From assembly GCA_000708835.1 (NCBI GenBank), contig DF237004.1:7480-71479 (forward strand): 64,000 nt of DNA, given 5' to 3'. The translations under genes were made by a program, and so were the position numbers. How positions within the stretch are numbered: the stretch's first letter is position 1; every line of letters starts with the position of its first letter. The DNA is from Klebsormidium nitens (Eukaryota > Plantae > Klebsormidiophyceae). The notes under the pieces are model-generated. The model saw only the letters and a program-made list of their open reading frames with translations. It did no database searches and was not told the DNA's origin. Shown in pieces: positions 9,073-64,000 of this stretch.

Positions 9073-10417
9073 GTGCAGTATTAGGGAGTGAACGGCACGC
9101 AATTTTGCCGAGGAAGTGTAACACATTTTTGCGGATTGAGGTTGCACGATCACCCCAACCAAATCAATTGAAGCCGCCGAATGAGTTGGATCATTGTCCG
9201 TTAACTGGAGCCGAGAGACAGTCTGCGCCGCTCTCATACAGATGGATTGAGATTTGAGTCGGCTGTAACGATCAAAGCAAATATTCACTCGAGCTCCCTT
9301 AAGCAGTCAACAATGCACATCTCCAGATGTCAGTTTACCATGTAGTTTACGTGGGGCAGATTTAAACGCAGCTAGTAAGTCAAGCGGTCGGACATGATTG
9401 TTTTAACTAATTGGCTACAAAGGTTTTGCTGAGTTCGCTGCGTTCAATGTATTTATAGGTGTTTATTTGTTACGTGGCACGCAAAACTAATCGTGGATAC
9501 AGAAAGCCTAACTTCCTCAGGCAAGCTGAAGTAAAAAAGTCGCCATAACATGATGCAGAGATCGCGATCTCTGAATCCTGAAAGCATGCGCCATGGCTCT
9601 CAAAATATTTCCTTTGGCACCATTGCCGATGGTCAACTAGATGAAACTTGTGAAAGCATGCACAGTGGATCGACCACAATATCATCAGAGTGACAGCGCC
9701 TATAGCTGCAGATAGGCATGCTAAGAGCATGCTTGCACCTGATGGCACTGATCTCTTTGACAGCAACTTCATTTGGTTATGTCGGCTGTTTGATCCGGTC
9801 TGAATCCGCATTCGGTAGCAGATGTGGCGGCAGAGTGGCCGCAGCGTCAATATATCCCGTCCGGACATTTAAGACCTGGCCACCATTTCGACGATCACTT
9901 GATCATATGGGGAACTAAGTGGATATGCAGTGAGACGGAGTCCTTAAGACTCCCCATGCTTGACAATCGCAAGACATACCGGTATTGGGTTACGTAATGA
10001 CCCTACATTGCCAAGTTATACTGTTTTAGTCAACTTTGTGTTGACACTGATCCACCGGTGAAAACCCAACAATTGAAACGTGCAGCTCACACACGTATCG
10101 TCGTGGCCGATTGAAGCTTCGTTCGAACCAGAGTACCGAAGGTACATTGATGTGATTCGCAGCATATGATTTCAAATTGTGCTCCTGACTGTGCGGGCAC
10201 TTGCAAGCAGCGCACGCATGCACGAAGTGGTAGCGGCGAAGGAAGGACGACAGCAAGAAGCGCATTTGCAGAAGCGGGTTGCAAAGCGGAAGGCACAAAA
10301 CGCTGTGCGCGGACAAAACAAAAGCTGCAGTGGAGCTCACGTATCAAAGTAGAACCGTCATCACAACTGGGGTTGGAATCTCCTCAATCGAGGCGCGCGC
10401 GTTTTGTTTGCAAAGCG

Positions 10418-12685: not shown

Positions 12686-14071
12686 GATCAAACTCGAGAC
12701 AATCAGAGGCCTAGGTCGAATAAAGTTCGCACATCCATCCGCCGATCTGCTTCGCTCAGCGGCCATGGGGTCATGGGCACCGCTTGGAAAAAGAGCTTTT
12801 GCGATTTGAGTCTGAGATCCGCCCTGAATTATGGTGCTCAATTGTGTCGTCCTCAGACCCAGTGTTCTCGGAGATAGAGCACCCAACCTTGAGAGAGTCT
12901 GCCGCACTGCATGACCCTCGGGTGTGAGTGAGGCAATCGCACGCGAATATTGTATGTGTTTGGAGTAACGGCGTCGTGCAATCGATGCAGCTGCCTCGTT
13001 CCAAAAGCGCCGCGCGCCCTTGCATGCTGATTGATACCATTGCACAGACATGCGAGCGGCTCTCTTGTTGGTGGATACTTGGGAAAAGGCACTCGACACG
13101 TCTCGACACTTCTTTCCAAACAAAAGTAAGTTCAGGATTGGGAGCACATGCTCCGCCGTTACAATGCACGCACCGCCCCAACTCCTCATGCCTGCAAGAA
13201 GCCTGATACATATGGACCTTGACGTATGCATTTAGAGCTGCAATTCGATCATTCAGGCTTGCTCAGCCTCGAATGACTGAAGCAGCTCTATCATTTGACG
13301 GGAGCTGACCATCATTGCATGCCGGCTGAAGCTCGATATTTATACAGGCTCGCTGTTCTGAATCACCATCTGCATGCCCGGTGGCAGCGTTGATCGAGTG
13401 CTTAATAGCCGCTTTAATGCATCACTAGAACCTAGCCGCCCTAGCTTTTATAGCATCATATACTGGCAGCCGTTCAACTGGCTGGCGGCCAACACAGCGA
13501 GAGCGATCAATCTGCATGTGGCCATTGAATTCAATGTAAGAACTTGCTTAACGGGCAGCTAGGTCCACCGGACTCCTCAATCAAATAGTCGTATACGGTA
13601 TGGCACGCAGCATCGAGAATAAATTGCCGGGGTTCAGGAACTTTGAAGCTCACTTCCATGTGAATGATTCTGCATGACGAACAATATCCAGCCGCCTTCT
13701 ATGTGTTGGAGGTCATGCAGAGCCGGCAGTAAAATCACTCACGTGAGAACGAGTGCACTTTGATATTTGCAGCTTTCACCTGGAATGAGCACTTTAATGA
13801 TGAGTCAATCGTCTTCTCGACCCGGTTGACTGCACTTAGCGGGTCTTTCGAAAATCAAACGTCGCACTTTGAGGCGTTGAGGCACCACGGTCGACGATAA
13901 CCATAACCGAAGCCCGTTTGCAACAGCATTCGCTTCCTTAATTCTGTATGAATTGCATTTCCGTCTTCGTCATCCTCATCACTTTCTGCTGAATACGGGC
14001 AAGCAACAATTCCCCATATCGCAACTCCCGTTGGGCTAATCGTCATGCAGTCTGACGGCAAACGACCCGTT

Positions 14072-17000
14072 TTAAGCGCTGTTGCGGTAGCTGCAGAGTA
14101 CGAATAGCCGCCAGCTTATGATGGCGAGAACGACAACCGCGGCGATCTCAAAGCCAACGACCGACACCCCGTCGGTAACCTTGCCCAGACGGAGGTAGCT
14201 GCAAGTGAAAGAAATTGAGTCAATCATCGCGTTGTCTCTTCTTTGCATGGAAAAGAAGTGGTGAAGCCAGAGCGGATGAGCGGGTGAGCGGATTTCAAAT
14301 CACGAATGACACTACAAGCTGTCCACACGCTTCTATCGAACGACCAGCAGACTCGTCGGTAATATTTGCGCTCCTGCGATAGGTTTCACAGAAGACAGAA
14401 CTGCATTCCGACCAGAAGTGCACCCTACCTGCTGCTTTCAACTGATACTTGTCTTGAAATCGTTCTCATCAAAGCAAGAAGCGCTTCGATTGCATTCTTT
14501 GCAAGCAAATGAAGAGGAAAACAAGCACAAGGGAAAACAATAACAATTACGTCCACTACGGGCTGGTACACTGGCAGAAAGCATTTTTGGGAGAAGGAAT
14601 GGGGGAGCTCTGGGGTGGGCATGGTTACGAGTAATAAATCTTCAACTTCAGGGGATCTACTTAGCTCATCCCCCGAGGGATCCTCAGAGAAGCATTGCAA
14701 CTTGTATCCTTCTCGAGGAAGAAAGTTACCAGTATTAGGGTTCGCTCACCTCAGGACAACAGGCAGCGCAGCGTGCACGCCCGCAAATGTGTACAGAATG
14801 GGCAGCAGGCCGGCGGGCTTGCTTTTCCGGAGCCAGATGAGGGACGCCAGAGCCGCCAACGACAGGTTGAAGACCTGGAGAAGTTTACGGAGCCCGCGGT
14901 CAGCCAATGGCCTAATTGGCAGAGCATCTTTTGACAGTGGATGCTCACTGCTTTGATTGTCACACAGCGTGGCCGAAGCTACCGTTCCAAATGCCTGCGC
15001 AAACTCATCCTGTTAAGTGATCACACACGTGGGCCTGGATCTCCACTCAACGGTCAGCGTATGTCTCCTCGTGAAGTTTTCACCATTCCGGAAAGGTCGG
15101 ACACAAAGGAGCGGCGACAGGGACAGTCCCGGCGGATCGGGGAACAGCATCGCTCAGAATTTTTAAATCTTGCAGCTTCACCAGAGAATGTCTGAGGGCA
15201 ATTATTCGACTTGCAGTCCTCTCCTCGCGTGGGCTTCGTCTTCCTGCGAAGCAACCGCTGATCACTTCACACCCATATCTTAGTCAACACCGGTTGTGGC
15301 AGCCGCTCAAAGGGGTCAAGGGCAACAGCTCACCAGGTTCGCGTTCGCCTCGAAGCCCTGCAGGAGGTCGTCCCAGGAGGACTCCGCCTTGCGTGCGTTC
15401 ACCCACAGGGGGACAGCCCGATGGAGCACGGAGTCGGCAAAGGCCCAACCTAAGAGCGAGGAAGAATAGATGAATGGGTGTGGCTCTCTTTCTCTACCTG
15501 ACAGCCCGCAGGAACCTGCGTCTCTACATTCTAGTGCACACAGAACGAGAAAAGAATTTCGATGACCTTGGAATCCCTCAAGCGCACATGTTGCTTGCCG
15601 AATGGCTTGCTGATGATGGGTGCAGATTACTCCGCGAGCTGGGAAACAGACGCGGAACCGCACGGTTTTCTGATGATAGACCGCCTATGACATGACTCGA
15701 ATAGCACGTAAATCACCCGCTGTCAGGCGGGAAGGGTCGACAGTGTCACTCCTCATCGGTCTCGCTTCTAGATGGCCGTCTGTTCTTAGCTTCCAGCAAT
15801 CCGTGTTGTCCATGTATGGACTGAACCCACTTAGATTCGACCATATCTGAATGGCCCCACTGGGAAATGCATCCAACGACACAGACAAGACACCTGAGGC
15901 GATACTCGCAAAACCTGTCGTAGGGGCTCTCTCATCGGTCGAATGTACCTCAAGCATCAAACGGTTAGCTGACACACTGGCAGTCTGCGAGATCTTTTTG
16001 ATGGTTTTGCGCATTGGAGTGTTTCTAACCTAAGCCGACCGCCTGGAACTTGTGGTTCTGGGAGATGTTGCGGTACTGAAGCTGCGTCAGAGCAAAGTAG
16101 ATGCCAACGATGTCCAGAAAGCCAATCAGGCCCTTGAGGATCTCCTGCAGCACACAGGCGACGGAAAGTGGAGGTCAGGTTTCGAGAGAGGCTCTTTCAG
16201 AGCTTGTGTCAGAAAGTCTACCACAGCATGTGAGACGGTGTGAACCATGTCACGAATAAGCTATGACCATATAGAGACCAGATGACAGCAGAGAAGTTGA
16301 TATGATGGCCGTTCAGAGAAGGGATCGGTGAAGGGAGGAAAGGGGGCGTTTGGGGGTTTACCTGGTTGAGATCGAAAACGTCTGCATCTTGAACTCGTAG
16401 GAACGTGGCTTGGCAGATGAGCTGCGAGGAAGAACAAGTGTTAGAATGGAGGAAAAGCAAGTAGTCCAGTTAAAAAGGGGGCACAAAATCGCAAAGGGGG
16501 GGTGCCAGATATTTTGAGGAGAACTCTTGGATGGATTGTAGCCTACCGTGTCTTATAAGTCAGCGAGAGAAGTCGCTTGATCGATGATCTGCAGTTGTCC
16601 AGGGATTCTCAAGTCTGAGTCTAGTTCAGAACGTGGCACGTAGCGTCTGAGTATGTTGTGATCCAACAATAGCAGGACGGCATGTTATCTGACTGCCAAT
16701 AAACGAGTAGCCCAAGACAGTGGTCAATCTCAGATCTACACCCAGAACATCTGGTCGGAAGCAATGTGGTGGTAGAAGTCGATACTCAAAACTGGCCCCA
16801 AAAAGCGGGGGTGGCTTACTTTTAGAAGGGCGGTGGCGATGTAAACTGCCGCTGCTTTTGCGCTTGTCGTGAAGGTGTCGTAGTCGGACCTGGCAGAAAA
16901 AACACGGCGAATGTTTAAGGACCAAGCAAGTCACAGACACAGAGTATGTCCGCTACTTCTCTCGATCAGTAACTTAAGGCCAGAACCCATGATTATTCTC

Positions 17001-17864: not shown

Positions 17865-20800
17865 ATGGCCAGCTTCAAGGATCTCTCCTCCGACGCCGGG
17901 TTGAAGGAGCTGGACACGTACCTTGCTCCCAAGAGCTACATCACTGGGTGGGTTTTCTTCCTGTGGCCGAAAAATGCGGGGATCGAGATGGTCGGCGCAC
18001 GTTTTGGCGTCCCGTTCTGTCAATTCACCAGACTGCGGGTTTTGAGTGCATTTTGGAAGGACGGCAAGGGTCGCGAATTTGCTTGTTGGAGTTTGTCAAA
18101 GGAAATTTGTCAAATCATTGACGATCACAGTTTTTGCGGATATGCATTACATCCTGGTTGTCTATGCAAGTTCCTCAGCATGTGGACAATCTGGCAATTT
18201 GCCACTAATGGCAATCTGATAAATTGAAGCTCTGGTCTTGAGCAACCAGGCTTCCTGTCTTTAACTTTGTAGTGCTCCTGATTTGCAGGTATCAGGCATC
18301 TCGCGATGACCTGGCCGTGTATGCTGCCCTCTCCGCCGCTCCCGATGCATCGAAGTATGTCAACGCCGCTCGGTGGTACTCCCACATCACTGCCCTGCTG
18401 GGCCACAAGTGAGTGCACCGTTACCATCTTCTCTTGTACCGTATCCCCTGTGAGCATGAATTGGACTTCTTTGAACTTGTACTGCATTATCAGCACATTA
18501 AGAAGGTGCAATTATCTGCATCCGTTACCAGCATGGCACTTTGATGAATCTGTTGCATCGGAAGGTGCGCTTTAATCTCGTTCGTATCCTAGTAACGCCA
18601 AATGGGCATTGTTCAGCTGTGTATCATCAGATTCCAAAGAAGTCATCAGATTCCGAAGAAGTTTTACTGCACACTGGCCTGGAGGTTGGGATCGGTGTAG
18701 TAGGATGGATCCACAGCACCTAGTCAAATAGAAAACTCGAAATGATCAATTGCGATGACATGGCACAGCCATCTTCGGGGAGGCCTGGTATTCCTACCAA
18801 ACTGAGCCCTTGGTATGCATTGGCACAACCATCCAAGAAACACAAAGTGCTTTTCATTAATGCATTTGCAAGAGCGATGCTGAAAGTATTTGCCAGCAGA
18901 GACCGTGTGTGCAAACCTGATTATCTTGCACCAGGATTGAACTTTCAAATTACTAAATGTGCAGCTTCACCGGTGCTGCCACTGGTGTGAGCATTGGTGG
19001 ATCTAGCGCGGCCCCGGCCGCAAAGGCCTCGGCCCCCGCCGCCTCTGCTCCCGCCCCCAAGACCCCTGCTCCTGCTGCCCCCAAGGCAGCCGCCCCTGCT
19101 GCTGTAAGGCTCGCTTCGTATTGTCTGGGTATAGAAGCTGAAGTTCCTTTCCTTGCCCTCACTGGGTTGAAATGCCGAAGTTCCTTTGCATTGACCTCAC
19201 GAAATATCATCCATGTTTTGTTGGTGGAATGCTTTCAGGAATTTTTGAGTTCATTTTGTGGGACAGACATTCGTGATAGGTTCGATGATGTAGTTGTCCT
19301 TCTTATGATCTGAGCGCAGCTGAGCACTTTTGAGTAGACCAAGGTTGCTCTTTGGCGAGCGTAATCTGGCACAAACATCCCGAGTCCTGAAGGATGCGAA
19401 CAAGTCTCTTGCGGACAAGTGTATCACTTTTCTAGTTGCAACTAGAGTTTTTATTACTTTTCTGGTACCCTACGCCCTCAATAAGCCGGCAGACAGAAAG
19501 GTGTACGCCGTTGAACTGACACTGCGACTATGAGGGCGCAAAGTGACATAGGGGCTGTCTGCCTGTCTTGACTTCTGAAGGAACGGGCCTGAGCTTCCTG
19601 AACATCTATCACCAATTCAATCTTCTCTGGAGTCATTTGTCACACTGTCATCATGCAGAACCGACATCCCTGATCATAGATTTGAGATCTATTTTCGGTT
19701 TGAGCCTCCGTTTCTTTAGGTCTTCAGAATCAGTCAACACATCCCCAATTAAATACATCACTCAAGGGCTCTCAATCAAGTCCTTCTTGACTCTCTCAAC
19801 AGGACGATGATGATGATGATGACGATGACGATGTCGACCTCTTCGGTGAGGAGACGGAGGAGGAGAAGAAGGCCAAGGCTGACCGGGAAGCGGCAGCCAA
19901 GGCATCCGGCAAGAAGAAGGGTGAGTGGAACAGCACACTTCAGCCCGTGGGCCTATTACAGCGCCACCAGGACCCTTCCATTGAACATCTTGTTGTCTGT
20001 GAATTATGGGAAGGGGCTTCAGAGTGTTATGGGTGTTCTTTGCTGACCGCAAAGGTTCGGGTATGAAAGAGATGACCGGAATCTTAAACTTGTGCATCTG
20101 CGTGGGGGCCTGGCTCCCAGTTGCATCGCATTGCTCCTCGTCTTCCTGAGCATAGTTGCCGGGCTTTTCTGTGTCTCGCTGCTTCCCGTGGAAAGTGGCT
20201 TGAACTTACGCTTCCTCGATTGCCTCAGCTTTCAAGTATGTCAGTACCAAACTTCTAGCCGCGTTTTCGCTGCAAAAACCTTTGCCAAAAGGTAGGTGTT
20301 GGAGCTGAGCGCTTTTGTAAACAATACATCTTCAGGTCGGATGAGCTGACCGTTAGACCTGCTGCTTGTTTGGTGCAGTCATCGGCAAGTCGTCTATTTT
20401 GCTGGACGTCAAGCCGTGGGACGATGAGACCGACATGAAGAAGCTGGAGGCCGCAGTCCGGGCGGTGAAGAAGGACGGCCTCGTCTGGGGAGGATGTAAG
20501 TGCCAAAATGCTGCTCTGGTTCCTTACTTGTTCGAATCATGGATGTCTCTCGTTATGCGATTGGCATGATGGTATGCAAGTTTCTGCATCCAAGCAAATG
20601 CGTTCAGACAGCCCTGTCATTTTGACCAGCCAACGGGTTCCAATCATGTTGCTTTTGTCAACTTGCTGAGAGTTTTCATGGCCGATGGAAGAGCCACTTA
20701 AGCAACGTAACACGGAGGGTAGAAGTTTAATTTCTTGTCGCACCTCTTCCCGCTGAAGTCTGTCTCCGTTTAGGCCGACTCGCATGACTTAATCTTCTAC

Positions 20801-21783
20801 TGCTGTTGAGGTTATGTGGTGCTGTCAAATAAAGGTGGCTCTGAGCCATCTTCTGAACTTGCACTCGAGGGTTCCCAGGATGCTTGGCAACGTTTTCAAT
20901 CAGCGTGTTTCGGCAGTGGATTAGCTTTCCGGTTCCCCACAATGTGAGCGCAAGCTTGTGTTTGCTATTAAAACAGACGCTCATTGTTTGCCTTTCGAAG
21001 AAGAAAGAGGACGGAGGTCTTTCGTCGGATTGATTGTCCTATCGCGAGAACCCAACAGCACATTCTGGAGGTCGTAACCCGCTATCTTTACCAGCACGTT
21101 TATTGACCACCCATGTTCCATGTCGTTTGTCCAGCCAAGCTGCTCCCCGTTGGCTACGGCATCAACAAGCTGAACATTCTGATGACGATCGAGGACGAGA
21201 AGGTGTCCATCGACGAGCTCATCGAGGATGACCTGTGCGGCGGAGAGGAGACCAAGGAGTACGTCCAGTCCTGCGACATCGTCGCCTTCAACAAGATCTG
21301 TGAGTACATACTACACCCCAACCTTTCTGAAACACTAAGTTGGTTCACAGTGGATTTGGTGCACGGGGTTTTGGTATACGCTTCAGATTATTGGAGGTGG
21401 ATGTAGGATGATTTGAATCCAACGAGACCAGTATCGACGGAACTGGGCGCCACATCTTTCGTGATTTATAGTGGCCAACATCTATATTTTATCAATCATG
21501 GTCGGCATGCGTAAGAGTGCTGGCAAATGTCATCTGTTTTCCAAGTCCCTTTGGACACGTGTTCCATTATTGTTCGTCTTCCTGTTCCCACTACGATGTG
21601 GAGGGCTCCTCTTTTTGTCTGCTTTGCTTAGCGTGGTGCAGGATGACTGGACGTCGATGATTGGTCGTCATGTCAGGAAGGCGCGGGGAGGTTCCTCCCT
21701 TTCCGGGCTGCTCTTTCCTGCTTGCCCGCAGTTCTTTTTCAACGTTATCAAATGCGTTCTAACGGCCGCCATTCTGTGCAGAA
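17865..21783 (+). CDS. EEF1B: Translation elongation factor 1-beta/delta (eEF1B guanine nucleotide exchange subunit)
   Basis: Exons 17865-17947, 18289-18408, 18965-19103, 19803-19920, 20379-20495, 21135-21299, plus a probable stop split across an intron (T|AA, 21782-21783). Motifs [55 protein letters not shown]. Confidence 0.93.
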
Positions 21784-23258
21784 ATACGTCCAAGAAACGG
21801 ACAGGCTCTGTCAAGCATCCGTGCGGTTTTGTTTATGAGGAGCTGCTTATTCCAAGCGCAAGGCGGGTTTGCAGAATAAAGAGTTGACTGTGCATCAAAC
21901 ACGGACGCGTCATGCCAAGCGTGTAAGCTGATTGACGTGAATGCCGAGGAACGTCGAGTTTTGTCCAGCCAATAGGTTGGTCACATTCCAAGTTTTGCGG
22001 CACAAATCCATGCTTCATGTCAAGCATGCAACTATGGGTAGCCATTGAGTAATTGCGTTGGGGCAGCTGCACCCAGTGACTACGATGGGCTCTTCAATCC
22101 TGATTGCGAGTGCATCAAAATTACAAATTATTTTGAGTCCTTCTACTGAGTTAGTCGGCCATAAGGAATCACATGACGTGCGCTCATTGATGGCCTGATG
22201 GTAGTAGTAGTATATCAACAAGTCTGGTATGTTCATGATAGTTTATGCGCTGTACATACGAATTCGTATATCTCATGCACATGTGAACGGTGTCATTTGA
22301 CAGTTCGAGACATGGTCGAGCTCCTACAGCAGGCCGGAGCCAATCTACCTCTAAAGCAAGCATCGTGTGAATATTTGTCGCAAAGAACCGGGTCATGACA
22401 GTAGTATCGATCAAAATCAATCAAGGTATGGTATATGTAGAGTTTACTCTAGTACGAAACCCTGCGCGCGCCGGCCGGAAAAGGAAAGTCGATCAAAAAT
22501 GCAACATGCACTGGCCTAAAAAGATGATTAAGCATCTAACTGCATGCCAAGCACACCAACGGCATCAGGATATTGGCTTGCCTCTCTTTTACGAAGTAAA
22601 ATAGCAAGCTATTGCATTCGGGGCAACCGCGTGTCGGGCGACACTGTACGACGTGGCTCTGCGGAAGATAAGCATGTCCAGACTGGTGGTATTTCAACAT
22701 GCGTGGTGTTCGATACGAAAACGTACGCAGAATCCCCCTAAGGGAGGCGTCATTTTGAAGCCGTACCCCCCGTATTAACTGCTGTGGGGGGGGAGCCTAA
22801 AGCATCGGGTCAATGTTGAGGGTCGGAAGGGGGGGGAACCTACCAACTATGTGGCTGCGAAGCGGCCACATGGGGGGGGAACCCAAGCAGAAATGCAGCG
22901 GACCAGCATATGGAGGGGGGACTTGAGGCCTTCAGAGGCCTACTAACGCTGATGGGGGGGGGACTTGAAGAATTGGGACGGCCTGGACGGCGGCTGGCCC
23001 GCCCGGCCTGCCGGGCCGGCCGCAAACCCTTAAAGCCGCGGCCGGCCTATACTAGGATAAATGCCGCGCGTCCGATCGCGCACTTTCAATCAGCCCGAGC
23101 ACTCAGCTGCAGCATGCATGTACCGGCAGTGTCGAGTCTACAAGCTTGAAGTTGAAGTTGAAGACGGATCCGCACTGGCATTGTGCACCTTGCTGGCTGA
23201 GCAAGTCTTCCTGTAGTTGCTTTGAGGTGTACTTGCTGTAGCTTGGAACTGGGCAGCC

Positions 23259-26070
23259 ATGAAGAAAGCGTCAAATACGTTGCATGACTTCCTGAGCAAG
23301 CCCCAAGCAGGGCTGCAAACTGGTGGGAAGGGGGCAGGTGCTGGTAAAGACCGAGCACCCACTTACTTGGGCAAGGTCAATCTGAGCTGCCTAAGTGCAT
23401 CCGGGAAGAAGCCTGCAGCTCTTACAACCCTCTGTCCAACAAGGAAGCCTGACATCCCGCGCAGTGAGTCAGAGTTGGAGAAGCTGTTCCATGAAGCTCG
23501 CGACCAGCCCAACGCTCGCAAGACAGGTTCAAATGAGCTTAGGCATTTGCTGGCAACCTTTGTTACATGGGAAGAAGCCCTGCGCAAGGTAAAGGAGGAG
23601 CTGAAGCGCCGTACGGCTGAAGAGAAGAAGTGGAAGGCGGGTGCGCTGGAGCTGACCCCTGGGCTGTGGTGGAGCATGGCTGCCAACCGCAGAGCTGTAT
23701 CAACGTGGGAAGCAGAACTCACCAACCGGAAGGATCAGTACCAGAGGTATCTCCAGGAGTTGTACGACTCTGTCCTGGAGGAGCTTAACGCGGGAGCTGA
23801 CATGATCAAGTACAAGTGCACTTTGTCAGCTCGGTGAGTAACTTGCCAATCTCGCACACAACCTGGTAATGGTTAGCAGGTTGACTTCTGATCAGATGAC
23901 GCAGTTCTCTTCTTTGGATTCTGATACAACAGTTGGCAATATCACTTCATGACTGAACACTGTTTACAGTACCTAGTAGGACATGCATGAGAATCTGATC
24001 CGTGGTCAGTGCCACTCTGTTTCTTGGTGCTACTTGAAGACAAGGTTGCTTTCAGATTTTGAGGACGTTCAATTGCTTTCGGCCTGTCCCATATAATAGT
24101 TGCACATAGTCTAAAGGTGCTTCTTTTTGTGCAACATCCAGAATGTACAGGGACCAGATGTCATTTGCAATGTTCATTGCTTCAAAAGTGCCAAGGCAGC
24201 CAGCCTTTCATTTGAGCTTTCAAACTGATACAATTACATTGCTGCTTTTTGCAGGAGTATTCCGGCCTTTGTCAAGCAGAAGAGTCTGATTGACAAACAG
24301 CTGGACGATCTCCAGTCCTGGATCCGTCAGATGCAGCGCGACGAGAGCCGGTACTTGAAGGACAAGATGGCAAAGCGGAAGCTTGATGGGGTTTCGGTGG
24401 AGGGGGCTGTAGACGCTCCTGATCAGAAGAGGCTGCGAGCGCTTGAGAACTTCAAGGGGAAGTCGAGCAAGGGTCAGCTTGACATGGGCAAGGGCGAGAT
24501 TCTGATCCTCCTTCCTGAGCAGGATGAAGCGGTTGTCGCAAAGGGGTGGTATCGGGTGCAAAACGAGGAGGGTGCAGAGGGGCTTGCGCCGGTGGCCTGG
24601 TTGAAGGAGAGGAGTCCTTCCCCGCCTCGACGAGCCGCCAGCCCTGAGGCTGGTGACAGAGAAGGGAGTGTCAGTACGGCGCCTGCGCTGGCCCCCGGGA
24701 GCAGCCCCCCCCGCACGCAGGTTGGTCCTACAGAGGTACTCACTCCCACGTCCCGTCCAGTTTCACAGACCCCGTCAGGAGGGGTGGCTGTGAGTGAGAA
24801 GCCGGAGGGGGATTGGGAAATGGCTGGTACGGAGGCTGCAGAGGTCGAGAGACAGCGAGAAGCTGAGTCTGGCAGTCCCCGCGCTGACAGTGAACCGCAA
24901 TCCGGGAGCTTAAAGCTTCAGTTCTCGGAGAAGTCTTTATGAAGCCAGGAAGCCGCTGCCGGGGGAGGAGGCGGCTTGGGGAACGGGGAGGGTGGCGGCT
25001 TGGTTTTGAGAGAAGGGGGCGCATGTGGGGGCGCCAATCTGAGCGGAAGAGGCAGTGACTGCGCAGAAGCCAGCGCAGATGCTGAAGACTCCGCTGCAGA
25101 GAGTGAGGGCGAGGAGAGGACGGCGAAAGAGTCGGATGGTTCTTGGCTGGGGGTGCGGATTGTCCAATTGAGCAAAGGTTTGTTTGCGTCCTCAGCTCCT
25201 ATGGAGTGGGCGCAAGCAAAAGTCCTGCTTCGCAAGGCAATCAGTGATCCCAAGTTCAAGAGGCAAAGCTGGTGGAAGAGTTGTCGGCTGGTTAACATGA
25301 AAGGGGCGCTGGCAGCGATGGAGAGGGTTGATGGGTCAGATTCGGCAACGTTGGAGCTTTGGGAAGCATGGCATTGCTTGCAGTCGGTGGAGGGGTCAAA
25401 CAGAAGCGACTTTCAGAAAAATGCCCGAGCAAATTGCTGGAGAGCCTTGCTTTCCGTCGCCCCCTTCGTCGCCATTGTCATCGCTAGCAGTGACGACACC
25501 AGCTCGCATAGGACAATTCTCTTGCCTCGCAGCGGCGAGGTGGAGGTTTTTAGGGAGTTGCAGCAACATTTCAGGACTTCAGTAGAGCTTGATACCGCAG
25601 GAAGGTTGGCTAAGATTGCGGGTCTGCCGTTGAAAGATCTCCAACTCTTAGCAGGGTCAACGCAAGCCTCGAAAGTTTTGGACTACGCTCTAGGATTGGT
25701 TGTAGGAAAGAAGCAATTAGCCAGGCAGGTTGATGGGGTCAGTCTTCGTACGCTGCGTTCGCACACCAGGCAGACAGAGAGCGCTCTCGATGCCATGCCC
25801 AGCATCCTCAAAGAGGTAGTTGACGAGGTCAGCGGCGAGCGAGAGAGATTCATGGAGGTAGCGGAAAAAGCTGCTGCACGCGCACTAGACGCGCAGGATC
25901 AGGGAAGGGGTGTTCCTGCTGAACTTCTTGAAACAGCGGCGTTCGTAGCACAGCGGAAAGGGGAGATCAGAGAAGTTGGAAGCAAGGCATGGAGGGCGCT
26001 GGTGAGGAGGCGATTCAAGAAGCGTTTGGAGAACACCCCAGAGCTGAGGCATGTGGCACGGGGCCACCAG
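23259..26070 (+). CDS. Transposon ORF1: coiled-coil region, SH3-like domain, low-complexity linker and helical domain; one in-frame TGA
   Basis: Exon 23259-23833 (cg|gtgagt) joins exon 24255-26070 (tttgcag|g ... cag|gtaagt). The second exon is one reading frame of 605 codons broken only by TGA at 24940-24942. SH3-like segment at 24427-24612. Confidence 0.65.
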
Positions 26071-26254
26071 GTAAGTATCGAAAGCTTCCTGCTCGAAAGT
26101 GGATTGTCAAGCGTCAAGTTGCTGCATGTTCGAGTTTGCCTTGCCTTTCAATCTCAGTATTAGGGCTTGATTCGTTCAAATATTCGCAGCGATTTGGGTT
26201 TTAACAAGTCATTTTGCTCAAGTGAACTGTCTGGCTGCTTGAAGCAGCTAGTGC

Positions 26255-26326
26255 GCAGGGGTGTGCAATATGGTCTGGGTAGAAAGAGCAGCAGGGGTGT
26301 TCAATATGGTCTGGTTGGAAAGAGCA
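26255..26326 (+). repeat. 36-bp tandem duplication inside the transposon
   Basis: gcaggggtgtgcaatatggtctgggtagaaagagca followed by gcaggggtgttcaatatggtctggttggaaagagca. Confidence 0.85.
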
Positions 26327-26770
26327 GCTGGAGTTCAGTGCAGGGATTTGCAATCGAGCAATCAGTCTTTTTGGGATTTCAATTCTGCGCAGACTGCAGG
26401 CATGGGCATAGTGCACATCTCAGCGCCATCTTTTCTGCCTTTGCTTCAATGATAAAGCACCCCTTTCTTTCGAACACCTTGAAACCCCACTTTCACGAGT
26501 TTTTGTCTCAATGATCATGAGAAAGACACGCTTCTTGCTAGCGTCCCTGCTTTGAAGCTCCTTGTCCAGGTGTTTGACTGGCCCCCCTTGTTGACTGGCT
26601 CCAAAGTTTGCTCGGCACCTAGAGGAAATGAACTTGGTGTTTTCGGTCAACTCTTCTTGTAAACCCTCACAAACCCGGGAAACTTTTCTGCGGCCAACTC
26701 TAGGCCTAGTATTAGGGACTAGTTCAAAAGCTTTTTTTAGTATACATGGTGACTGATTGAGGCTTTGTTG

Positions 26771-29700
26771 ATGTGCAAGATCGCTGTCCATGTCAAGTAC
26801 CCCCACTTCAAGCCCGCGGTGGAGCAGCTCGTCATGCACATGAACGGCGGTCGGGCTGATGCCAAGCGGGCGTCAGTTTCGATCTACATGGGGAAGAGCA
26901 CCTGGAAGACGGTGGTCAAGAAGCTGGCTGACGAGGCGTCCATGGGTGATTTGGGAGGCGCTATCCGGGTCTCCGAGTCCACTCTGAAGAAGCATCGGAA
27001 GCGAGCCGATCGGTCCATCCAACCCAAGATAGCAGATCCTGCCGGGCAGGTGGATCTCTCCTCTCGCAAGGTGGCCAAGGTCCTCCTCCCCACGGAGGAT
27101 GAGCAACCAAACGGGTACATCATGAACAAAGCCCTGAAAGAGCTCGAGGCTTGGGCGGTTCTGAACTCATATTGGGTCAACACTGACAACACGTGAGAGT
27201 TTATGACCAGCTTCAGAGCCTTTTCTGCTTGTACTTCCACTGAGAAAAGTGAACGTAGTCTGTCTACTGGTCAGCTAGGAGGAAGTCAGGTTTTGATGGT
27301 GGAGTAGACAACCAGCATGCGTCCTTGTGTGTATATGACTGATTCTGTTTGCATACTTCCAAATCTGACCCATTCTTGTTGCGTGCTTTCAGTTACTGTT
27401 CGTCAGCGAGTAGAAAGCCAGGTTTGATGGTGGGTTTGACCATACTTCAATTCTGCCTGCTATTATTGTTGCATGTTCAGTTACTGGTTGCTGCGCAATT
27501 CCTTCTTGATCCTTTTTCACTTATCCATAACCTTTGCGCAGGGACGACAAAGCAAACCTGCTCCTCGACCTGATATACTCGAAGAAGACCCTCCTCCAAC
27601 TCCTCTACCAGCAGCGGCCCAGTGCTGAGTTCAACCTGGACGCATACGACAAGCAAGTGAAAGCTCACATGCACGATCCCCCGACTGCTGCGGGGTATAA
27701 GCTGGTCCTCAGCTCTCATCTACTCCTCCACCTAGGGACGGATGCTGTGACGGAAGCCGTACCTCAAGGTAAATTAGCAGGGTGCCGTTTGTGTCTCGTG
27801 CTCAAAGAGTAATTGCTTTAACTGGTCTCAGCTTATTCTGACATGCTGGTTTTGCTGGTCCGTGACAGTCACATGTTCGACATGCAGGCGTCCTTTTCTG
27901 GATAAAGATGGTACACTGTCGCTCGTTTGAAGTCTGTGCTTGTTGCGCTTGCACGTTGTCTTGTTTTTCGGTCCAAAATCCGGACAATTGGAGCATTTGG
28001 TATATGCAAACCATGCTGAGTGCTGAATGCGTTTCAAACTTGTGTGGCAAGGTGGACCGCGTCCGGTGCTGCTCTGGGATGTCTCTGGTCGGAAGCACAC
28101 GCGCGACGGCCTCATGGTCGTGTACGTCAAGGGGATGAAACTGCAGCGATCCACAGCGTACGAACACACGCGCAACATGCTCCACAACCTGGAAGCGTCG
28201 CCTGAGCTGTACCAGGTGCGAAGCTGTGCTAATTTAGCATCAGGAGATTTCACCGTCAAACTGATTGCTGTAAACAGTGGAACGAAAGGCCCTTGTACTT
28301 TCTGCTTCATCTTAGTTCAGACGTTTGTCCTAATGCTATGGCTTGTCTGATTCGGATCGGCAACACAATAAGGCGTCTGAAGTGCTCGATTGCAGCTCTC
28401 AGAATCATCAGCATAAGTATTGGGCTGTCCACAGATGTCTTTCCGCACCCAAAAGGCTCCCGAGATTCAGACATGCACGGCGCTGTTGCCACCAATATCA
28501 GCTGAAACCACCCGCAATTGATGTCCCAACAGCAGTCAGCCCCATGGACGATAGATCAGGATGTGGTGTTCTCCTTCACATCCAAGGTATGGGATGTCTT
28601 GAATCGTGATTGATATCCTGATTCCATGTGCACACATTCAGGTTCCAGGAACGGAGAAGACAAAGCCCATCCTGGTCAACATGGTGGACGGCGGTGGCGA
28701 CGAGAACCCCCGCTTCTACGCCAAAAAGATGGCTTCCGCTGTGCTATTCATGCGCGGCGGGTATGAGCTACTCATTTGCGCGACGCGCGCTGCCGGCTGG
28801 AGTGCGTACAACCCGGTGGAGCGCGGGCAGTGCTACCTGACCCAGGCGTTAGACGGCTGCATTTTCGAGTCGGACTTCTACGGCAAAGTGCGGTTGAAGG
28901 CGGATGGTACAGCGGCTTCTGATGCGGTTCGTCGCATTTCACCATCACTCTTTGAAAAGTCCCAGCTGATTCCTCGCTTGCCCGTTTTAGCACGTGTTGC
29001 TTTGCAGGGCCCCTACAAGCTGGTTTTGCAGTCTCATGCTTGTGGGTGTAGGTGGCAGATTGTATTGCAGGCTGTGCGTAGGCCTAGATTTGTTGAGCCT
29101 GAAGCCTTTCTCAAAGCACTTGAGCTTCACCAGGAAAGGTTTGCTCGATCCCTACAAGCTGGCTTCGCAGTCTCAGGCTGGTGGGCGTTTGTGGCAGCTT
29201 GTGTTTGAGGCTCTCCGCTGTCCTTGGTCTGTGGAGTCTGAAGCCTTTCAAAGCACTGAAATGCCCCCCGAGGAAGGATTGACACGCCTGGGGTTGATCG
29301 TGTGCCGTCAAAACAGTTCATTAATGTTTTCACTTGAGTGGCACGACGATAAGATCTCTTCATATCTGCAGGACGCTAAGCTGGAAGGACGAAACTTCGA
29401 GTACGCGGTGGAAAAGTGCCGGGCCACGTTAAACAGATCAGCGGCCTTTGAGAGGTAAGCAGGTCGAACGCTTGCTCTTCAATACAAGGCTGTTTTGAGA
29501 CTCAGGGCAAGCAGCCTTGACAAAGATTGTCTAGTTGATAAGCCGGTGATTCAGATGCTCTTGATTCAGCTGTGGCGCACATTGATTTGCTGCACTATTG
29601 ACCGCAGAATCAGGGCCAGACTCTGATGGTGAATATTCTATGCTCATGAACACAAATCTGGTTATCTAGGTTGTACACAACTGTTTCGGATCCTCTGCAA

Positions 29701-30497
29701 ACAGACCTATACTAACGTGCATCATGGTTGTTTTTTGCAGGGAGATCAAGGCTGTCGTCCCCCCCCCACCTCAAAGCAGCTCCCCGTTTGTATATATTGA
29801 CCACGAGGCGTTTGAGAGCTACCGCAAGAGTAGCGGGGAAGGCGGGTGCGGATGCCAGACGGAAGACCGGTGCTCGAGCGCTCGGTGCCGGAAGTGCTGG
29901 GATCAGGGTCTGCCGTGTACGAAGCGCTGCAAGTGTCAAGGGAAGTGCGGCAATCCACATCTGATGCCGCTCCCCGAAGACCTGGCTTGCTATCCCGTGG
30001 AGAATCGCGCGCTCGTCTCCCTCGAGGAGATTGTTGCGCAGCTAACTCCGCGAGATGTTGAGTTTTGGGCGTTGAAACATGGCAGGTTCAGGCACTACTG
30101 GTTCCAGTACAAATTGTGCGATCTCGCGGAGGCGGAGAGTTGCTGGTACTGTAGTCGGTTCGGCGAAAGGCAGATACCTACTCTGTCTTTCTTCCCCATC
30201 GTTTCCGTCCCTGACGGTGAAGGGAAGTACGTCGACCTGAAAGAGCGTGCGGAATTGGTGAAGAAAAGGGATCCAAGTGCGGAGGCCTTCTTTGCCGACT
30301 CTGCGCTCCCCTCAGTGATTCTGGCCACCGCCTGGCAAGCGTCACCAACACTGACTGACGAAGCATTGTCCAAGTTAGTTGACGCCACAAATCTTCAGAG
30401 GGCTTCAATTGTAAATTATTTTAGGAAGAAGAATGAAGCGCCCAGAGAAAACAATGCTGCTGACAGAGACAGAATTGTAGAAGATGGTGTCGAATAA
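26771..30497 (+). CDS. Spliced Zator-like DDE transposase with CXC and homeodomain-like C-terminal modules
   Basis: Exons 26780 (or ATG 26771)-27192, 27542-27768, 28052-28215, 28642-28887, 29372-29454, 29741-30497, phases consistent. Candidate catalytic motifs TDDKA (27543), VDGGGDENPR (D at 28687) and SAYNPVER (E at 28819; 43 residues between D and E). Further motifs HDPPT..YKLV and LEGRNFEYA. Family assignment is from recalled motifs. Confidence 0.8.
29011..29260 (+). repeat. Diverged ~139-bp tandem duplication in a transposase intron
   Basis: ccctacaagctgg at 29011 and 29150; both copies continue through similar sequence to ctgaagcctttc. Confidence 0.8.
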
Positions 30498-32490
30498 CAT
30501 AACATTATACAAATTGCACTCGCAACTTGAGTCTCACGTACGGATGGAGGCTAATAAATCTGCTTGTATCAAGAAGATGGTTCGATGCTGTTTGGAATCG
30601 CAATAAATTAGCGCGTGATGTGCAGCGGTTCATCTCACTTGCGTCTGTCATACCTAGCTAGTATATATGAAATTGATTACATGTTCGAGAGAATGTATGG
30701 TGACATTTGCTACGATCTCATTGGGTCCTCGGTCACTCAGCACTGCCAAGCATAATATATACTAATATCATTCATACATGGTTCGACTGCATGATGTCGT
30801 GCATCATTAACAAGAGCTATACATGCTAATTCAAGAAAGGCAAGGCTTGGCGACATATTTGGAAAGCGGTCTTGATTTATGGCCATGCAGATTGAAGAAC
30901 ATGGTATGATGTTCTCTTTTTACGCGGTAGCCACCTGGATGATGAAAATGAGATACGAGTGCAAGATTGTGGTCAGGATACAGATGTGACATGGATTGTA
31001 TATTGCAAGCATGTATTTAAGAGCAGCTGTCCTGACTGCTGTGGCGGTTCATGCGCAGGTTCATATGCATGCCGATTACTACGGTACCATGCCCTACACT
31101 CAAAGTGACAATGTGACATGGCTGCGTGTGGCTTGCATGATCATACGGTCCAAAAAAAAAAACTCAAAGTGACATGGGGGGGGGACCTGAGGGTCGAAGA
31201 TTAGGGTTTGTGCGATGAAGGGGGGGGTACTTGAGACCTATACAATACTTCTCGGCATGGGGGGGGGACTTGAGGCTTAAGCCAACGGGCCAAGTCAACA
31301 TGGGGTGAAACCTGAAAGCTCATACAAAAACCCCTCAGCAGTTAATACGGGGGGTACGGCTTCAAAATGACGCTTCCCTTAAATAGTCCAGACCATGTTT
31401 ACGTCCAAGCCTAGACTGCCCCGCGCGGCTGCGCAGAATTAAATGCTACTCGGAATCGTTCGCGGACGCGAAGTTGCCGCCCCAAAAATCCGTAACGATG
31501 TAACGTTTGGCCTCGATTTCTCCGAACAGGCCTGCTCTAAAGCTGCCACGTTGCATGGCGAGGTCAAAATAGCTGCCACGTCCTGATTCGTACCGCTGCC
31601 CAACATCTGACACTGTGAAGCACCCCGGGCTCTGAACGTCGAAATCAAAATTCAAAACACCCTTATTTGCGATGGACTCCTTCAGTACTGCTTGCCTTGG
31701 GATTTCAGAAGGTATTAAAGTGCCCGGAAGGTAGAGTGGCGAGTAGCCTGGTACGCACTGTAGAGATACCCACGGTGCGTACCAGAAGATGGTGTACGGA
31801 TTACGTCTAACGTGTGCGCGCTCGCGCAAGACTTCCATGGATAGAGCCACGTACAAGATATTAAAACGCCAAACAATGCCCTTTTAAAATTTTGCCCAGT
31901 CGCACCACAGAGAGGCAAGCCCCCGCCGCCCTTCTGGGCGGTCTATCATGTACATGGCCCGGGTGATTGCACATGCAGTTTTACGTCTCAAATCCAAATC
32001 TAAGTGGCGTGCATGTACATACGCAGCTGCGTGATAGTACACTGAGTCAAGGTAGCCGCTGGGGGTGCTGCCGGCCTGCCTGCGGATGCAACATTCCATA
32101 TAATACTTCCGAGTCCGATCGATACGCGAGGGCAGCAACTTCAACATAAAACAAGAGTTCATTTGATGCGCGGCATCAAACATGCGTTGGGAGCTTGCCT
32201 TCCGCTCAAGCATTTGGAAACACTTGACAATATAAGCGCACCTACTTCTCTGCTTCATCTATGGAACATGTTTTGGACCATGCGGATTTTCGCGCCAGTT
32301 TGCGTGCTGAGTCTACTCGTCGACAAGCTTGAGTTGCTAACTTTTGGCCCGTCGATTCCGGATCTACTGCAAAGGCAGAAAGCTTCTTCTCTGTAAGGTG
32401 CTCGAAACTTCAGGTCTGCTATTTGGCGGCGGCCGGTGCTCCTGGAACTGGTGTCCGAGCTAGCCCTATGACGATCCCGTACATGATGAC

Positions 32491-34556
32491 CTAATCTGCC
32501 TTCGTAGTGTCCTGCTTCTTTGCCCGACTCGCTTTGCAATGTTTTCTGTGGGTATTCCAGTGCAGCTTCTGATGCTCCTTGCTGCATGAACGAAGCACAC
32601 GTGATGCTTGGTTAGCGGGGTTTGGTTGACACGTGATAACCCGATTGCAAGTGCTAAAGTAGACTCGCAGAAACGTTGCTCGGGCTTGTGTGCAGAGTCA
32701 ACCATGCCCGACTCTGGTGCATGATTTTCAATCCAATGATCGAAAGAAAATTGCAAAATTGGCGAGGAAACTGCGTCCAAGGTAGTCAATCAGCTCAAGA
32801 GTCTGGTCTGGCCTAACTACCCAAGCTACTCATCAGCAAAATCATAGCGAGAAGATTCGCAGCTTCTGCCGAGGATTACTACGACTGACAAGAACGAAGG
32901 CTCCTTGTCAGAATCGTAATGCGGCCGCAAACAGCCAATCGGTTCCAGAGCTTCTTCTATCGAACTTATATTGAGCTTCTCAACGTTTTGTTGGCCCGCT
33001 CTGATCTCAACGTTGCAATGAAAAGGGACGGTTCGAAGCCAGAAGTCGGCAACGGCCAGAAATTTCACGGGTCTTTGACGTCATTGGCGATACGATCATG
33101 ATGTAACAACGGCTAGTGCAAAGTAAAGCCTTCGGAAAGACATTCCCGACCAAAATAACAGTCGCAATCTTAAGCTTACTGATGTGGAGAAGAAAGGCGT
33201 CTGTCCGATGATGCAAGAAACTAAACGGATCCACTGAATCGGCAACTAGTCGCATACGCGCAGAACGCAAAGCATTGCCGCAGATGAAAAGGGTATCTGA
33301 CTATACGACGTAGGCTCTCACCTGCAGTATCGCGCCACCTGGCAGCGCCCGCACGACGGGCTCGCGGCCGGCCGCGCACAGCTTCCGCGAGCACACAACC
33401 GGGGCCAAGTACTGTCTGCTGAGCTGTTCTTCCGCGAGCTCCCAATCCGCGGCGGAAAGCTCGCGTCTCAGGGGCATGTCTAGACCTCGCAACCTGCCTT
33501 CGTAGTACGCCCACGGGTGGGAGTCCGGTTCCGCGCCGTTGATCGTCCGCTTGTGGGGGCGGAATCCTTCGAGCGCGTTGTGCGCGCGCAGCTTTCAAAA
33601 GGAAAGTTTCCGCAAGGATGTCCACGGAAAGCAAGCGGAACAGGGCGATGTTGCAGCTGCGGTACGCCGGAGACGCCACCCGCTTGGACTGTTTGGACAT
33701 CTCTCGCACGGGGGACGCTTCATAGATGGCCGCAATGAACTATAGGAGGCCCCGGTCGATCGCCCACATTTGACTGTCCGCAGAAGACGCGAGCGAGACT
33801 GCTAGACCCGCCATTAAAGCGAGTCGGATCCTTCGGACAACGTCAGGAGACATCTGCGCCAAGAACTGCGAGCGCAGCAGGTTCGTGAGTTGCTCGAACA
33901 TGTTCCGCTCATCCGATGCGTCGCGGATGGCGTCCCGGAACGCTTTCGAAGCCCGCGCAAAGTTGGCCAGGCATTCCAGAGAACCGGCCACGACCAAAGT
34001 GCCCAAAGATTTTAAGGCCGGGAAGTTCCAGAGGCCCCCCGAAATGCGCACAATCTTGCAGAAGTGGGCGATGTGGAGCACAAGACGCGCGTACATCTGC
34101 CGCGCGTTCTCCTTCTTTTCCGACCCGCTTCCGCTCCGTTTCTGGTCCGGTGCTCCTCCCTCGTCTTTTTTCCCCCGCTCTGTTCCGTTTCCATCCTCTT
34201 CCGGCCGGAATCCGTATTCCTCCCCTCCCAGCCGCAGTCCCGCGCTCCACTACCACCTTGCTCGACGTCAGCATCCCAAGCGACAGCGTGTAACTAGAGG
34301 CGAGGAGGTGTTGGCGACCTTTGCTGTCGCCGTCAATCCGATATGGTCGCCCGAGCGTCAGCCACAAGAGCCGCCTAAGAACGGCACCTCCGTCCCATGC
34401 CGCTATTTCCTGGGCGAGCCTAGCAAAGCGCAATCCATTCTCATCTTCCGGACTCTTACAGAGGCCCATCGGCAGACTGCATCCGCTCCGGATTCCGTCG
34501 TCTGACGTCAGCAGGGAAGCGCAGCGCTCCACGGTCTCGTCTAGGTCACCCTGCAT
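32491..34556 (-). pseudogene. Pseudogenised paralog of the MYND gene at 10418-12685, in inverted orientation
   Basis: Starts MQGDLDETVERCASLLTS and has the same intron position (donor after YCS; exon 2 at 32581-32491, KEHQKLHWNTHRKHC). Lesions: frameshift after SKVVV (~34245), in-frame TAG after RGLL (33740-42), frameshift near 33600, and a net 20-nt loss just before CGRC. Confidence 0.88.
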
Positions 34557-35903
34557 CGTGTTGCAAATAAACGCGCGCCTCTCAATTCGAGACATTTCGT
34601 CCCAATTGCTATGACAGATCTGAGAATCTCGTGAGCTCCGATGCGGCCTCCATCTCTTTAAGTACAGAAGGCGCCAAAGAAGTTTTCGTCCTAGTTGCGA
34701 TGGCGCTTCTGAAAGATCTTGTGAGCTCTGGTGCAGCTTCGCAGCTTGTCCTTTCCCCTCGCATAGCGCTTCGTGGCTTCCTTTTTGCAACCCGCTTCGC
34801 TCTCTGCATCGCATAACAGTGTGCGCTGCGTGCTGGCCAGGCGGCCTCCGTCTCTACCACGCTTCGTGCATGCGTGCGCCGCTTGCCAGTGTCCGGACAG
34901 GAGCGCATATACAGCTACTGAAGAGATCACACATGTATGCTGCGAATCAGAGAATGGCACTTGAGTAAATTGGGCCTTAAAGCGACCGGCCACGTACAAA
35001 ATTGTGCAGTAACACTGAACAATTCAGTTGGGCGAGTTGGCACCGGTCACCACTAATTCACGAAGTAATTGACTGCATGAACCGGAACTTCAATTGGAAT
35101 CACGTAAAGCAAAACTGCCGCCTGAGTTTGCAACTGTCGAGCGCAAGATTTTAGCGTACAAGCCACAAGCCACAAGCCACAATATACTTGCTACATGTCC
35201 TTCCATATCCCTGGCGAGCTATATCTTGGCCTGCAATGAATCAAAATTTTGAGGTTAACCCTCAAAATGAGGATCGGGGCCTCAGGATGACGTTGCGATC
35301 CTGCGGATTGCTTGCGCGATCAAAGAAGATGCATGCAATTGGCACCATATTGCATCATCATGCTCGTGCCGGGTTCATTAAGCAGGTCCGACACGAACTA
35401 ATTTACGGTGTTTGCTTCACGTTACCATTGGCTGCAGAAGACTGTGCCCATTTAAGAGGTCTTCACACGAACATATTATGGGCGAGGACCATGATGGCTG
35501 GAATATAGTGACGCCGAACCGGTGCGTGTATCCTTTTGCGAGGGCTAGCTGGACTGTGGCTGGACAAGTTAGATTACCAACGGCCTGGCCTCGGATATGG
35601 ACCAAAAGAAGAAGAGACGATGTTCCCTTATGAAGCCCGAATGGACCACGATTACGCGATTTGCCAGTTAACCTGGACTCACAGTGTCTAAAAGAATACT
35701 CAAATCTATAAGAATCACTCGACAAGGGGCGCAAATCGCCGTAAGAACAAACCTACCTTCGAAGTATAATCCAGACCTCTTAAACCTCCATCTCAAATGC
35801 CAGCCAGCAAAGTCTTAACATGAACCTAGAAGAAGTAAGACCAACATGTCAATGTATCCTAACATATCTCGATCAAAAGACACCACCTTGTCTATTTTCA
35901 GTG

Positions 35904-58085: not shown

Positions 58086-64000
<5,915 letters not shown>

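Follow-up and report, generated by a model that had tools for sequence, protein, structure and literature searches.

DNA transposons are known to have added DNA-binding and chromatin-reading modules, such as THAP, BED, PHD and chromo domains, to their proteins. The Zator elements, which occur for example in Rhizophagus, are described as having no detectable Pfam similarity (PMC5751038), and Zator resembles ISAzo13, both making 3-bp duplications (PMC10045372). The stretch of DNA analysed here, called the window, is composed of 64,000 nucleotides of contig DF237004.1 of Klebsormidium nitens (positions 7,480 to 71,479, forward strand), and all coordinates given below without a contig name are window positions. 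It contains an 8.6 kb DNA transposon in which an upstream open reading frame (ORF1) with an SH3 domain precedes the transposase. Our reading, to which we give a probability of about 60%, is that a Zator/ISAzo13-like DDE family of the Klebsormidium lineage has gained the SH3-bearing ORF1 ahead of its transposase of about 1,018 residues and has kept it under purifying selection, presumably as an adaptor.

Compared to Zator, the present family shows the same terminal inverted repeats with a 3-bp flanking repeat (TAA/TAA in the metagenomic copy L002, described below), a DDE core with the motifs D-GG-D-x-N-x-R and N-x-V-E-R, and no direct Pfam match, as published for Zator. It differs in being much longer and rich in introns, with nine exons, in a transposase of 1,018 residues that has a large domain at its N-terminus and a CXC-like cluster of Cys residues, and in the extra upstream frame of 420 residues which carries the SH3 domain. 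An accessory protein beside the transposase is also found in PIF/Harbinger (a Myb-like ORF1 and the transposase) and in CACTA En/Spm (TnpA and TnpD, one unit with alternative splicing). The TWA-type 3-bp target is a further likeness to PIF/Harbinger, and as in both systems one transcription unit may yield two products. Unlike in these systems, the accessory frame is made of a coiled coil and an SH3 domain and has no Myb/SANT DNA-binding domain, the transposase is not of the DDE_Tnp_4 type, and only a conserved in-frame stop divides the two frames. Small beta-barrels added to a mobile-element protein are represented by the chromodomain of chromoviruses and the SH3-like C-terminal domain of retroviral integrase, and such a module is plausibly used for docking onto host factors. 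Those modules are chromo or SH3-like folds without an SH3_1 sequence match and are placed at the integrase C-terminus, whereas the present domain does match SH3_1 and is found at the front of a DNA transposon gene.

A preliminary description of this DNA, made from the letters alone, had placed an SH3-like domain inside a DNA transposon. This location is borne out by the inverted repeats, by homologous ends at other loci and by the DDE transposase encoded downstream. The element spans 22742-31378, with terminal inverted repeats of 48 nt and TAA/TTA flanks, and its ends fall within an inverted repeat (I7) of 51 nt which is 96% complementary (22739-22789 and 31331-31381). The ends are organised as follows:

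22739-22789, plus strand: left end; the terminal inverted repeat starts GGGAGGCG at 22742 and is preceded by TAA at 22739-22741, likely a 3-bp target duplication.
31331-31381, minus strand: right end; the terminal inverted repeat ends ...CTTCCC at 31378 and is followed by TTA at 31379-31381.
22785-22977, plus strand: subterminal G-run repeats GGGGGGGGAACC / GGGGGGGACTTGA, with a spacing of about 43 nt, forming direct repeat families.

Similar G-run repeats are present inside the right end (31173-31275), and these subterminal repeats could possibly serve as transposase binding sites.

Copies of the element were found in K. nitens and in an alga of one metagenome. The K. nitens scaffolds DF238546.1 (L001) and DF237613.1 (L003) carry exons 74-87% identical to those in the window; L001 stops at the window equivalent of 27092 and L003 begins at 27094, so that an assembly break has probably divided a single transposon copy between the two. 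A 232-kb contig of the JGI metagenome 3300060284 (L002) contains a complete copy of 8.4 kb (7580-15984), whose terminal repeats are homologous and which is flanked by a perfect TAA at either end. L004, from the same metagenome, is a 5'-truncated copy, in which an RVT_1 reverse-transcriptase ORF (L004:428-1471), probably a retroelement insertion or a rearrangement, is found in place of the expected 5' half. TAA precedes the homologous left end in L002 and TTA follows the matching right end in L003. The flanks are unalike between loci, for which reason the copies are considered separate insertions. The flanking triplets (TAA before and TTA after the window copy, with one mismatch, TTA after L003, and TAA/TAA in L002) fit a 3-bp TWA target, and the duplication in L002 has the length given by the published 3-bp rule (PMC10045372). 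A chance inverted repeat around a host gene could be ruled out, since the terminal inverted repeats are common to copies at different loci, where homologous ends bound the same gene set.

The gene model was built from the comparison of the copies and from the junctions of the annotated K. nitens proteins P0003 and P0006, and searches and folds were run exon by exon, with the exons unjoined. In the window the gene has nine exons with GT-AG at all junctions and consistent phases. ORF1, which ends at an in-frame TGA, has 420 codons, and the part after the TGA has 1,018 codons; since this family-wide TGA is the only lesion, the window copy is apparently intact. The preliminary description had missed ORF1 as a separate frame of 420 amino acids combining a coiled coil and the SH3 domain. 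Its parts are:

23259-23833, plus strand: exon 1 of ORF1; conserved ATG, helical/coiled-coil region, donor CG/GTGAGT.
24255-24939, plus strand: exon 2 of ORF1; long helix, SH3 domain, Pro/Ser-rich and acidic tail, conserved C-terminal ...SL.
24427-24612, plus strand: SH3 domain within exon 2; Pfam envelope about 24436-24591.

Exon 1 is 58% identical at the amino acid level to L002 and 73% to L001, and the proportions of nonsynonymous (pN) and synonymous (pS) differences between window and L001 are 0.14 and 0.62. It gave only weak coiled-coil matches in Pfam and no match in the PDB. Its donor is conserved in the three copies, and its ATG in the window and L002. The acceptor of exon 2 (GCAG/G) is conserved in the three copies as well, and the exon 2 helix is predicted with a confidence (predicted local distance difference test, pLDDT) of about 90.

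The peptide quoted in the preliminary description is the exact translation of 24427-24612 on the plus strand, and the Pfam scan which it had proposed places the domain above the gathering cut-off of SH3_1 (PF00018; 22.9 bits), scoring 27.1 bits when scanned by itself and 24.0 bits as part of its ORF of 203 amino acids. The match covers model positions 1-47 of 48, and SH3_9 is also matched, with a score just under its own cut-off. When the window domain was searched against the sequences of solved structures, all 33 matches were SH3 domains, the best one being the SH3 domain of CIP4 (2ct4, E=2.8e-5), with an end-to-end alignment. A protein-language-model search with exon residues 50-125 returned clusters of SH3_1 as the main set (score 0.91, 170-176 shared features), and a two-sequence family profile searched against the PDB gave SH3 domains in 15 of 16 matches (best E=3.9e-4). 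The Trp of the WW motif (GWY) and the Pro before the last strand (APV) are invariant in the three copies. The transposon domain thus resembles the SH3 adaptors CIP4/Toca, Crk and ITK/Tec in its best sequence matches and in keeping the WW-motif Trp and the Pro of the 3-10 turn. In distinction to these canonical domains, which are found in signalling or endocytic proteins, it belongs to a transposon, the first Tyr of its ALYDY motif is replaced, its last aromatic residue is variable, and its n-Src loop is 4 residues longer than that of CIP4. We regard it as very probably a divergent SH3 domain.

Exons 1 and 2 are present in all three copies which extend that far (window, L001 and L002). Differences were counted by the method of Nei and Gojobori over 62 SH3 codons, with bootstrap 95% limits. 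Between window and L001 pN is 0.135 and pS 0.563, giving a pN/pS of 0.24 (0.11-0.43), and between window and L002 pN is 0.230 and pS 0.731, giving a pN/pS of 0.31 (0.20-0.48). These values are similar to those of the transposase exons, in which pN is 0.07-0.21 and pS equally saturated. The introns are unalignable between copies, while the exons can be aligned. From the low pN/pS, the near-saturated pS and the alignment of exons but not of introns, it follows that purifying selection has acted on the SH3 domain during most of the period since the copy lineages diverged. Whether other copies keep the domain at a ratio of nonsynonymous to synonymous substitution (dN/dS) below 1 had been raised as a check in the preliminary description, and the answer is positive, as the domain is kept in 3/3 of the copies reaching it, with pN/pS of 0.24-0.31.

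More distant relatives of the element are found in the prasinophyte Cymbomonas tetramitiformis (L005), in an ENA metagenome (L006) and in a Logan assembly (L007). In all three the similarity to the window protein begins at 25168 (LSKGLF...) and extends over exons 4-7 and 9, and none of the three gave any alignment to exons 1 and 2. No SH3 domain was found in their upstream ORFs or full proteins, nor in the scan of 78 transposase relatives (0/78, see below). The earlier remark that SH3 is not a usual component of cut-and-paste transposons agrees with this count and with the absence of the whole SH3-bearing frame from the three distant elements. Because these relatives share the transposase but not exons 1 and 2, ORF1 is a retained addition specific to the Klebsormidium-type lineage, and no random cargo. 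Near the C-terminus of a protein of L006 (L006:3310-5247, residues 569-597) there is a weak match to Tudor_3 (E=0.001, below the cut-off), which hints that members of the superfamily pick up different small reader barrels. Searches for a host donor of the SH3 domain, using the SH3 ORF and a profile of the SH3 exon against a collection of 5.8 billion proteins, within 0.55-1.75 times the query length, found none. Together with a search using the next ORF, they returned four proteins in total, all of which come from copies of the present transposon family.

ORF1 and the transposase are joined by a region with an unusual arrangement:

24940-24942, plus strand: in-frame TGA closing ORF1; conserved in three copies within a 16-nt island, TCnTTATGAAsCsAGG.
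24943-25134, plus strand: Gly/Glu/Ser-rich spacer in the same frame as ORF1 and the transposase, with no ATG in the window.
25135-26070, plus strand: N-terminal domain of the transposase, with the donor CAG/GTAAGT; from about 25168 it is common to L001, L002, L005, L006 and L007.

In the three copies ORF1 ends in ...S-L-TGA. The 16-nt island around the stop is the best conserved part of a poorly alignable region, and its Ser codon varies synonymously. The length of the spacer (192, 279 and 201 nt in the three copies) is always divisible by three, and in window and L001 the frame of ORF1 and transposase contains 0 stops, against 2-3 in each other frame. Since its lengths are multiples of three and it is open only in this frame, the spacer looks translated, with the two frames held in register. 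The transposase of the distant relatives begins near the end of the spacer. The gene may possibly produce a stand-alone ORF1 protein, a fusion of ORF1 and transposase, or both.

Several observations weigh against the reading of ORF1 as a selected SH3 adaptor. The SH3 match is marginal overall, and the version in L002, 62% identical, reaches by itself no Pfam match at E<=1, while its 6 PDB matches, all of them SH3 domains, have E values of 0.13-1.7. AlphaFold models have a mean pLDDT of 53 for exon 2 and 56 for the SH3 domain alone, which is attributed to alignments holding two sequences only; the last strands alone of an SH3 barrel are built, and Foldseek on the second model finds SH3 structures exclusively, none of them significant (E>=0.03). 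ALYDY reads ALENF, AVREF or AIQAF across the copies, with E, R or Q in place of the first Tyr, and the last aromatic residue, W in window and L001, is R in L002, so that the ligand-binding positions seem only partly canonical. The domain is covered by three copies only. In L001 the SH3 domain is interrupted by a TAG and by an insertion of 1 bp, and in L002 two Trp codons have become stops, the first within exon 1 and the second where the transposase domain begins; the lesions of these two broken copies are ordinary recent decay. The searches gave no evidence of expression at the RNA or protein level, and an exact look-up of the 203 amino acid ORF of the window matched no record. The candidate partner of the SH3 domain described below is drawn from n=5 sequences. 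Around the stop, no donor site which could remove it is conserved in the three copies, and no stable or conserved RNA structure follows it (z = -0.95). In part these points would fit a domain which is not a true SH3 at all, being a Tudor- or chromo-like small beta-barrel reader or a chance match, similar to SH3 in its C-terminal half only. To the missing Pfam match of L002 and the lack of a confident barrel in AlphaFold may be added that the best profile matches, with the SH3 domain of ITK, align only the last 24 residues (14/24 identical), and that a Zator-like relative, L006, has the weak match to Tudor_3, a reader-like module. We consider this improbable, since the SH3_1 cut-off is passed over positions 1-47 of the 48 of the model, the CIP4 domain aligns from end to end, and every significant or near-significant match in three different searches is an SH3 domain. 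Still less probable is that the transposon took up part of a host SH3 gene in the manner of Pack-type elements and carries it passively, without any function for itself, which is one sense of the words "captured cargo" in the preliminary description. The domain is unseen in other members of the superfamily, hence acquired, and it is broken in 1/3 copies; these facts would suit cargo. The suggestion is disfavoured by a pN/pS of 0.24-0.31 with confidence limits under 0.5, by the persistence of an exon complete with start codon, splice sites and stop codon in lineages whose silent sites are nearly saturated, and by the lack of a host paralogue in the 5.8 billion proteins within the length range searched. 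Pack-type cargo would be expected to evolve neutrally and to be confined to one young subfamily, whereas the present exon is found in lineages with a pS of 0.56-0.73.

The stop codon raises a related question, which is whether the SH3 domain might be the N-terminal part of a single transposase of about 1,440 residues, the TGA lying in a short intron or being routinely read through. This is unlikely, but it has arguments on its side. The spacer keeps the frame in the three copies and is open in that frame only, it has no ATG in the window, and the annotators of K. nitens placed an intron over the stop in L001 (P0001). The window itself offers a strong phase-0 donor, GCT/GTGAGT at 24790, which could join the conserved AG/G at 24948 and would remove 159 nt in frame. 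Against an intron at this place, the three copies have no conserved donor in common, and the GT on which the annotated L001 model relies is missing from the window. Nor was a read-through signal found, as no stable or conserved RNA structure lies 3' of the TGA. In addition, the conservation of S-L-TGA with a synonymous change in the Ser codon fits a real C-terminus. We think instead that both products are made, a stand-alone ORF1 protein and, more rarely, a fusion of ORF1 and transposase. A strategy similar to that of retroviruses, in which a conserved leaky stop or a retained in-frame intron yields abundant stand-alone ORF1 and a minor fusion product, with the SH3 domain tethering the transposition complex either to the transposase through its VPPxP motif or to a proline-rich factor of the host, is a speculative proposal which we hold to be doubtful. 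The likeness to the read-through of retroviral gag-pol lies in an upstream frame closed by one conserved stop, with the enzyme in frame downstream, a layout which would give much accessory protein and little fusion protein. In contrast to gag-pol, neither a read-through context nor a downstream RNA structure was found in the present element. We know of no DNA transposon with such a layout of accessory and enzyme frames, in frame and separated by a stop.

With ORF1 read as an SH3-bearing frame under selection, a role as an adaptor serving the element can be proposed. In this frame a helical/coiled-coil region is followed by a single divergent SH3 domain and then by a disordered tail, acidic and rich in Pro and Ser. 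Through its coiled coil ORF1 would be oligomeric, and the SH3 domain would bind a proline-rich partner. This partner may be the transposase itself or, in line with the recruitment of host proteins suggested in the preliminary description, a host protein involved in nuclear import, chromatin or the choice of target. One candidate ligand would be the VPPxP motif at the start of exon 9. It is the sole PxxP in the whole transposase, it reads PPPP, PPSP, PPVP and PPLP in the four copies of the SH3 lineage, and it is absent from L006. The preliminary description had also noted a Pro/Ser-rich stretch after the SH3 domain as a possible PxxP ligand. The stretch is present, while its role as a conserved self-ligand did not hold: the motif is PSPPRR in the window, LSPPRR in L001 and PSPERL in L002, so that PxxPxR occurs in the window copy only, and a self-ligand beside the SH3 domain was rejected as not conserved among copies.

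The remaining exons of the transposase, downstream of its N-terminal domain, are the following:

26780-27192, plus strand: exon 4; 45-47% amino acid identity to L005-L007, junction as in P0003.
27542-27768, plus strand: exon 5; from copy comparison and splice sites.
28052-28215, plus strand: exon 6; contains LLWDVSGRKH, the Asp of which is likely the first catalytic Asp.
28642-28926, plus strand: exon 7; catalytic core with VDGGGDENPR and SAYNPVER.
29372-29454, plus strand: exon 8; from copy comparison and splice sites.
29741-30494, plus strand: exon 9; contains the VPPxP motif, a CXC-like cluster rich in Cys and the C-terminal region, with TAA as the stop at 30495-30497.

Exon 9 is conserved in L002-L007, and its Cys cluster gives only a faint match to Tesmin/TSO1 CXC (E=1.5). 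The intron between exons 5 and 6 (27769-28051) is present in the K. nitens copies in the window and in L003 and is precisely absent from L002:12460-12861, where exons 5 and 6 form one ORF; this is an intron gain or loss within the transposon family.

The transposase exons, each scanned separately, had no match in Pfam or NCBIfam. A profile of exon 7 from window and L002 was therefore searched against a large protein collection, and at E<=1e-3 it detected 169 proteins. In the 78 of these which were aligned, a core of Asp, Gly, Asp, Ala, Gly and Glu (VD-GG-D..NPR, ..VE-R) is at least 90% invariant. PF07592 (DDE_Tnp_ISAZ013) is touched by three of the 78, the best at 8e-6; the one inspected scored 23.2 bits, with the cut-off at 26.9. 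A language-model search ranked fungal and rotifer clusters first and gave PF07592 at 0.85-0.86. Since relatives touch PF07592 and the literature ties Zator to ISAzo13 and to 3-bp duplications, the element appears to be Zator-like, a likeness drawn from published descriptions of Zator.

The surroundings of the transposon contain several other features. Exons at 20366-21406 resemble translation elongation factor 1-beta/delta, and the transposon is located about 1.3 kb downstream of this housekeeping gene. An inverted duplication (10271-12663 and 32516-34798), with arms of about 2.4 kb which are 79-95% complementary by segment, encloses about 20 kb including the transposon. The arms, which carry a long ORF (10166-11671, 501 amino acids) containing a MYND-like Cys motif, resemble two paralogous genes in inverted orientation. 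At 60200-63850 there are direct repeat pairs and triplets, spaced by 110-210 nt and 81-94% identical, which suggests a gene composed of tandemly duplicated exon-intron units. A block of low guanine-cytosine content at 36300-37370 (0.38, against about 0.51 elsewhere) has long overlapping open frames on both strands and adjoins a methyltransferase locus.

The SH3-bearing accessory frame is an unusual but not revolutionary addition to a DNA transposon. Full-text searches of the literature turned up no DNA transposon in which an SH3 domain recognisable by sequence is kept under selection, nor was any case found among the 78 relatives. If the SH3 domain docks the element onto a host protein, cut-and-paste elements would have a new way of recruiting host factors, and this would give a handle on target choice in an early-diverging streptophyte. 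The most unusual feature is the conserved in-frame stop, which provides a testable hint of regulated expression of two products. The copy in the window, being apparently intact, is a candidate active Zator-like element in a superfamily for which there are almost no functional data.

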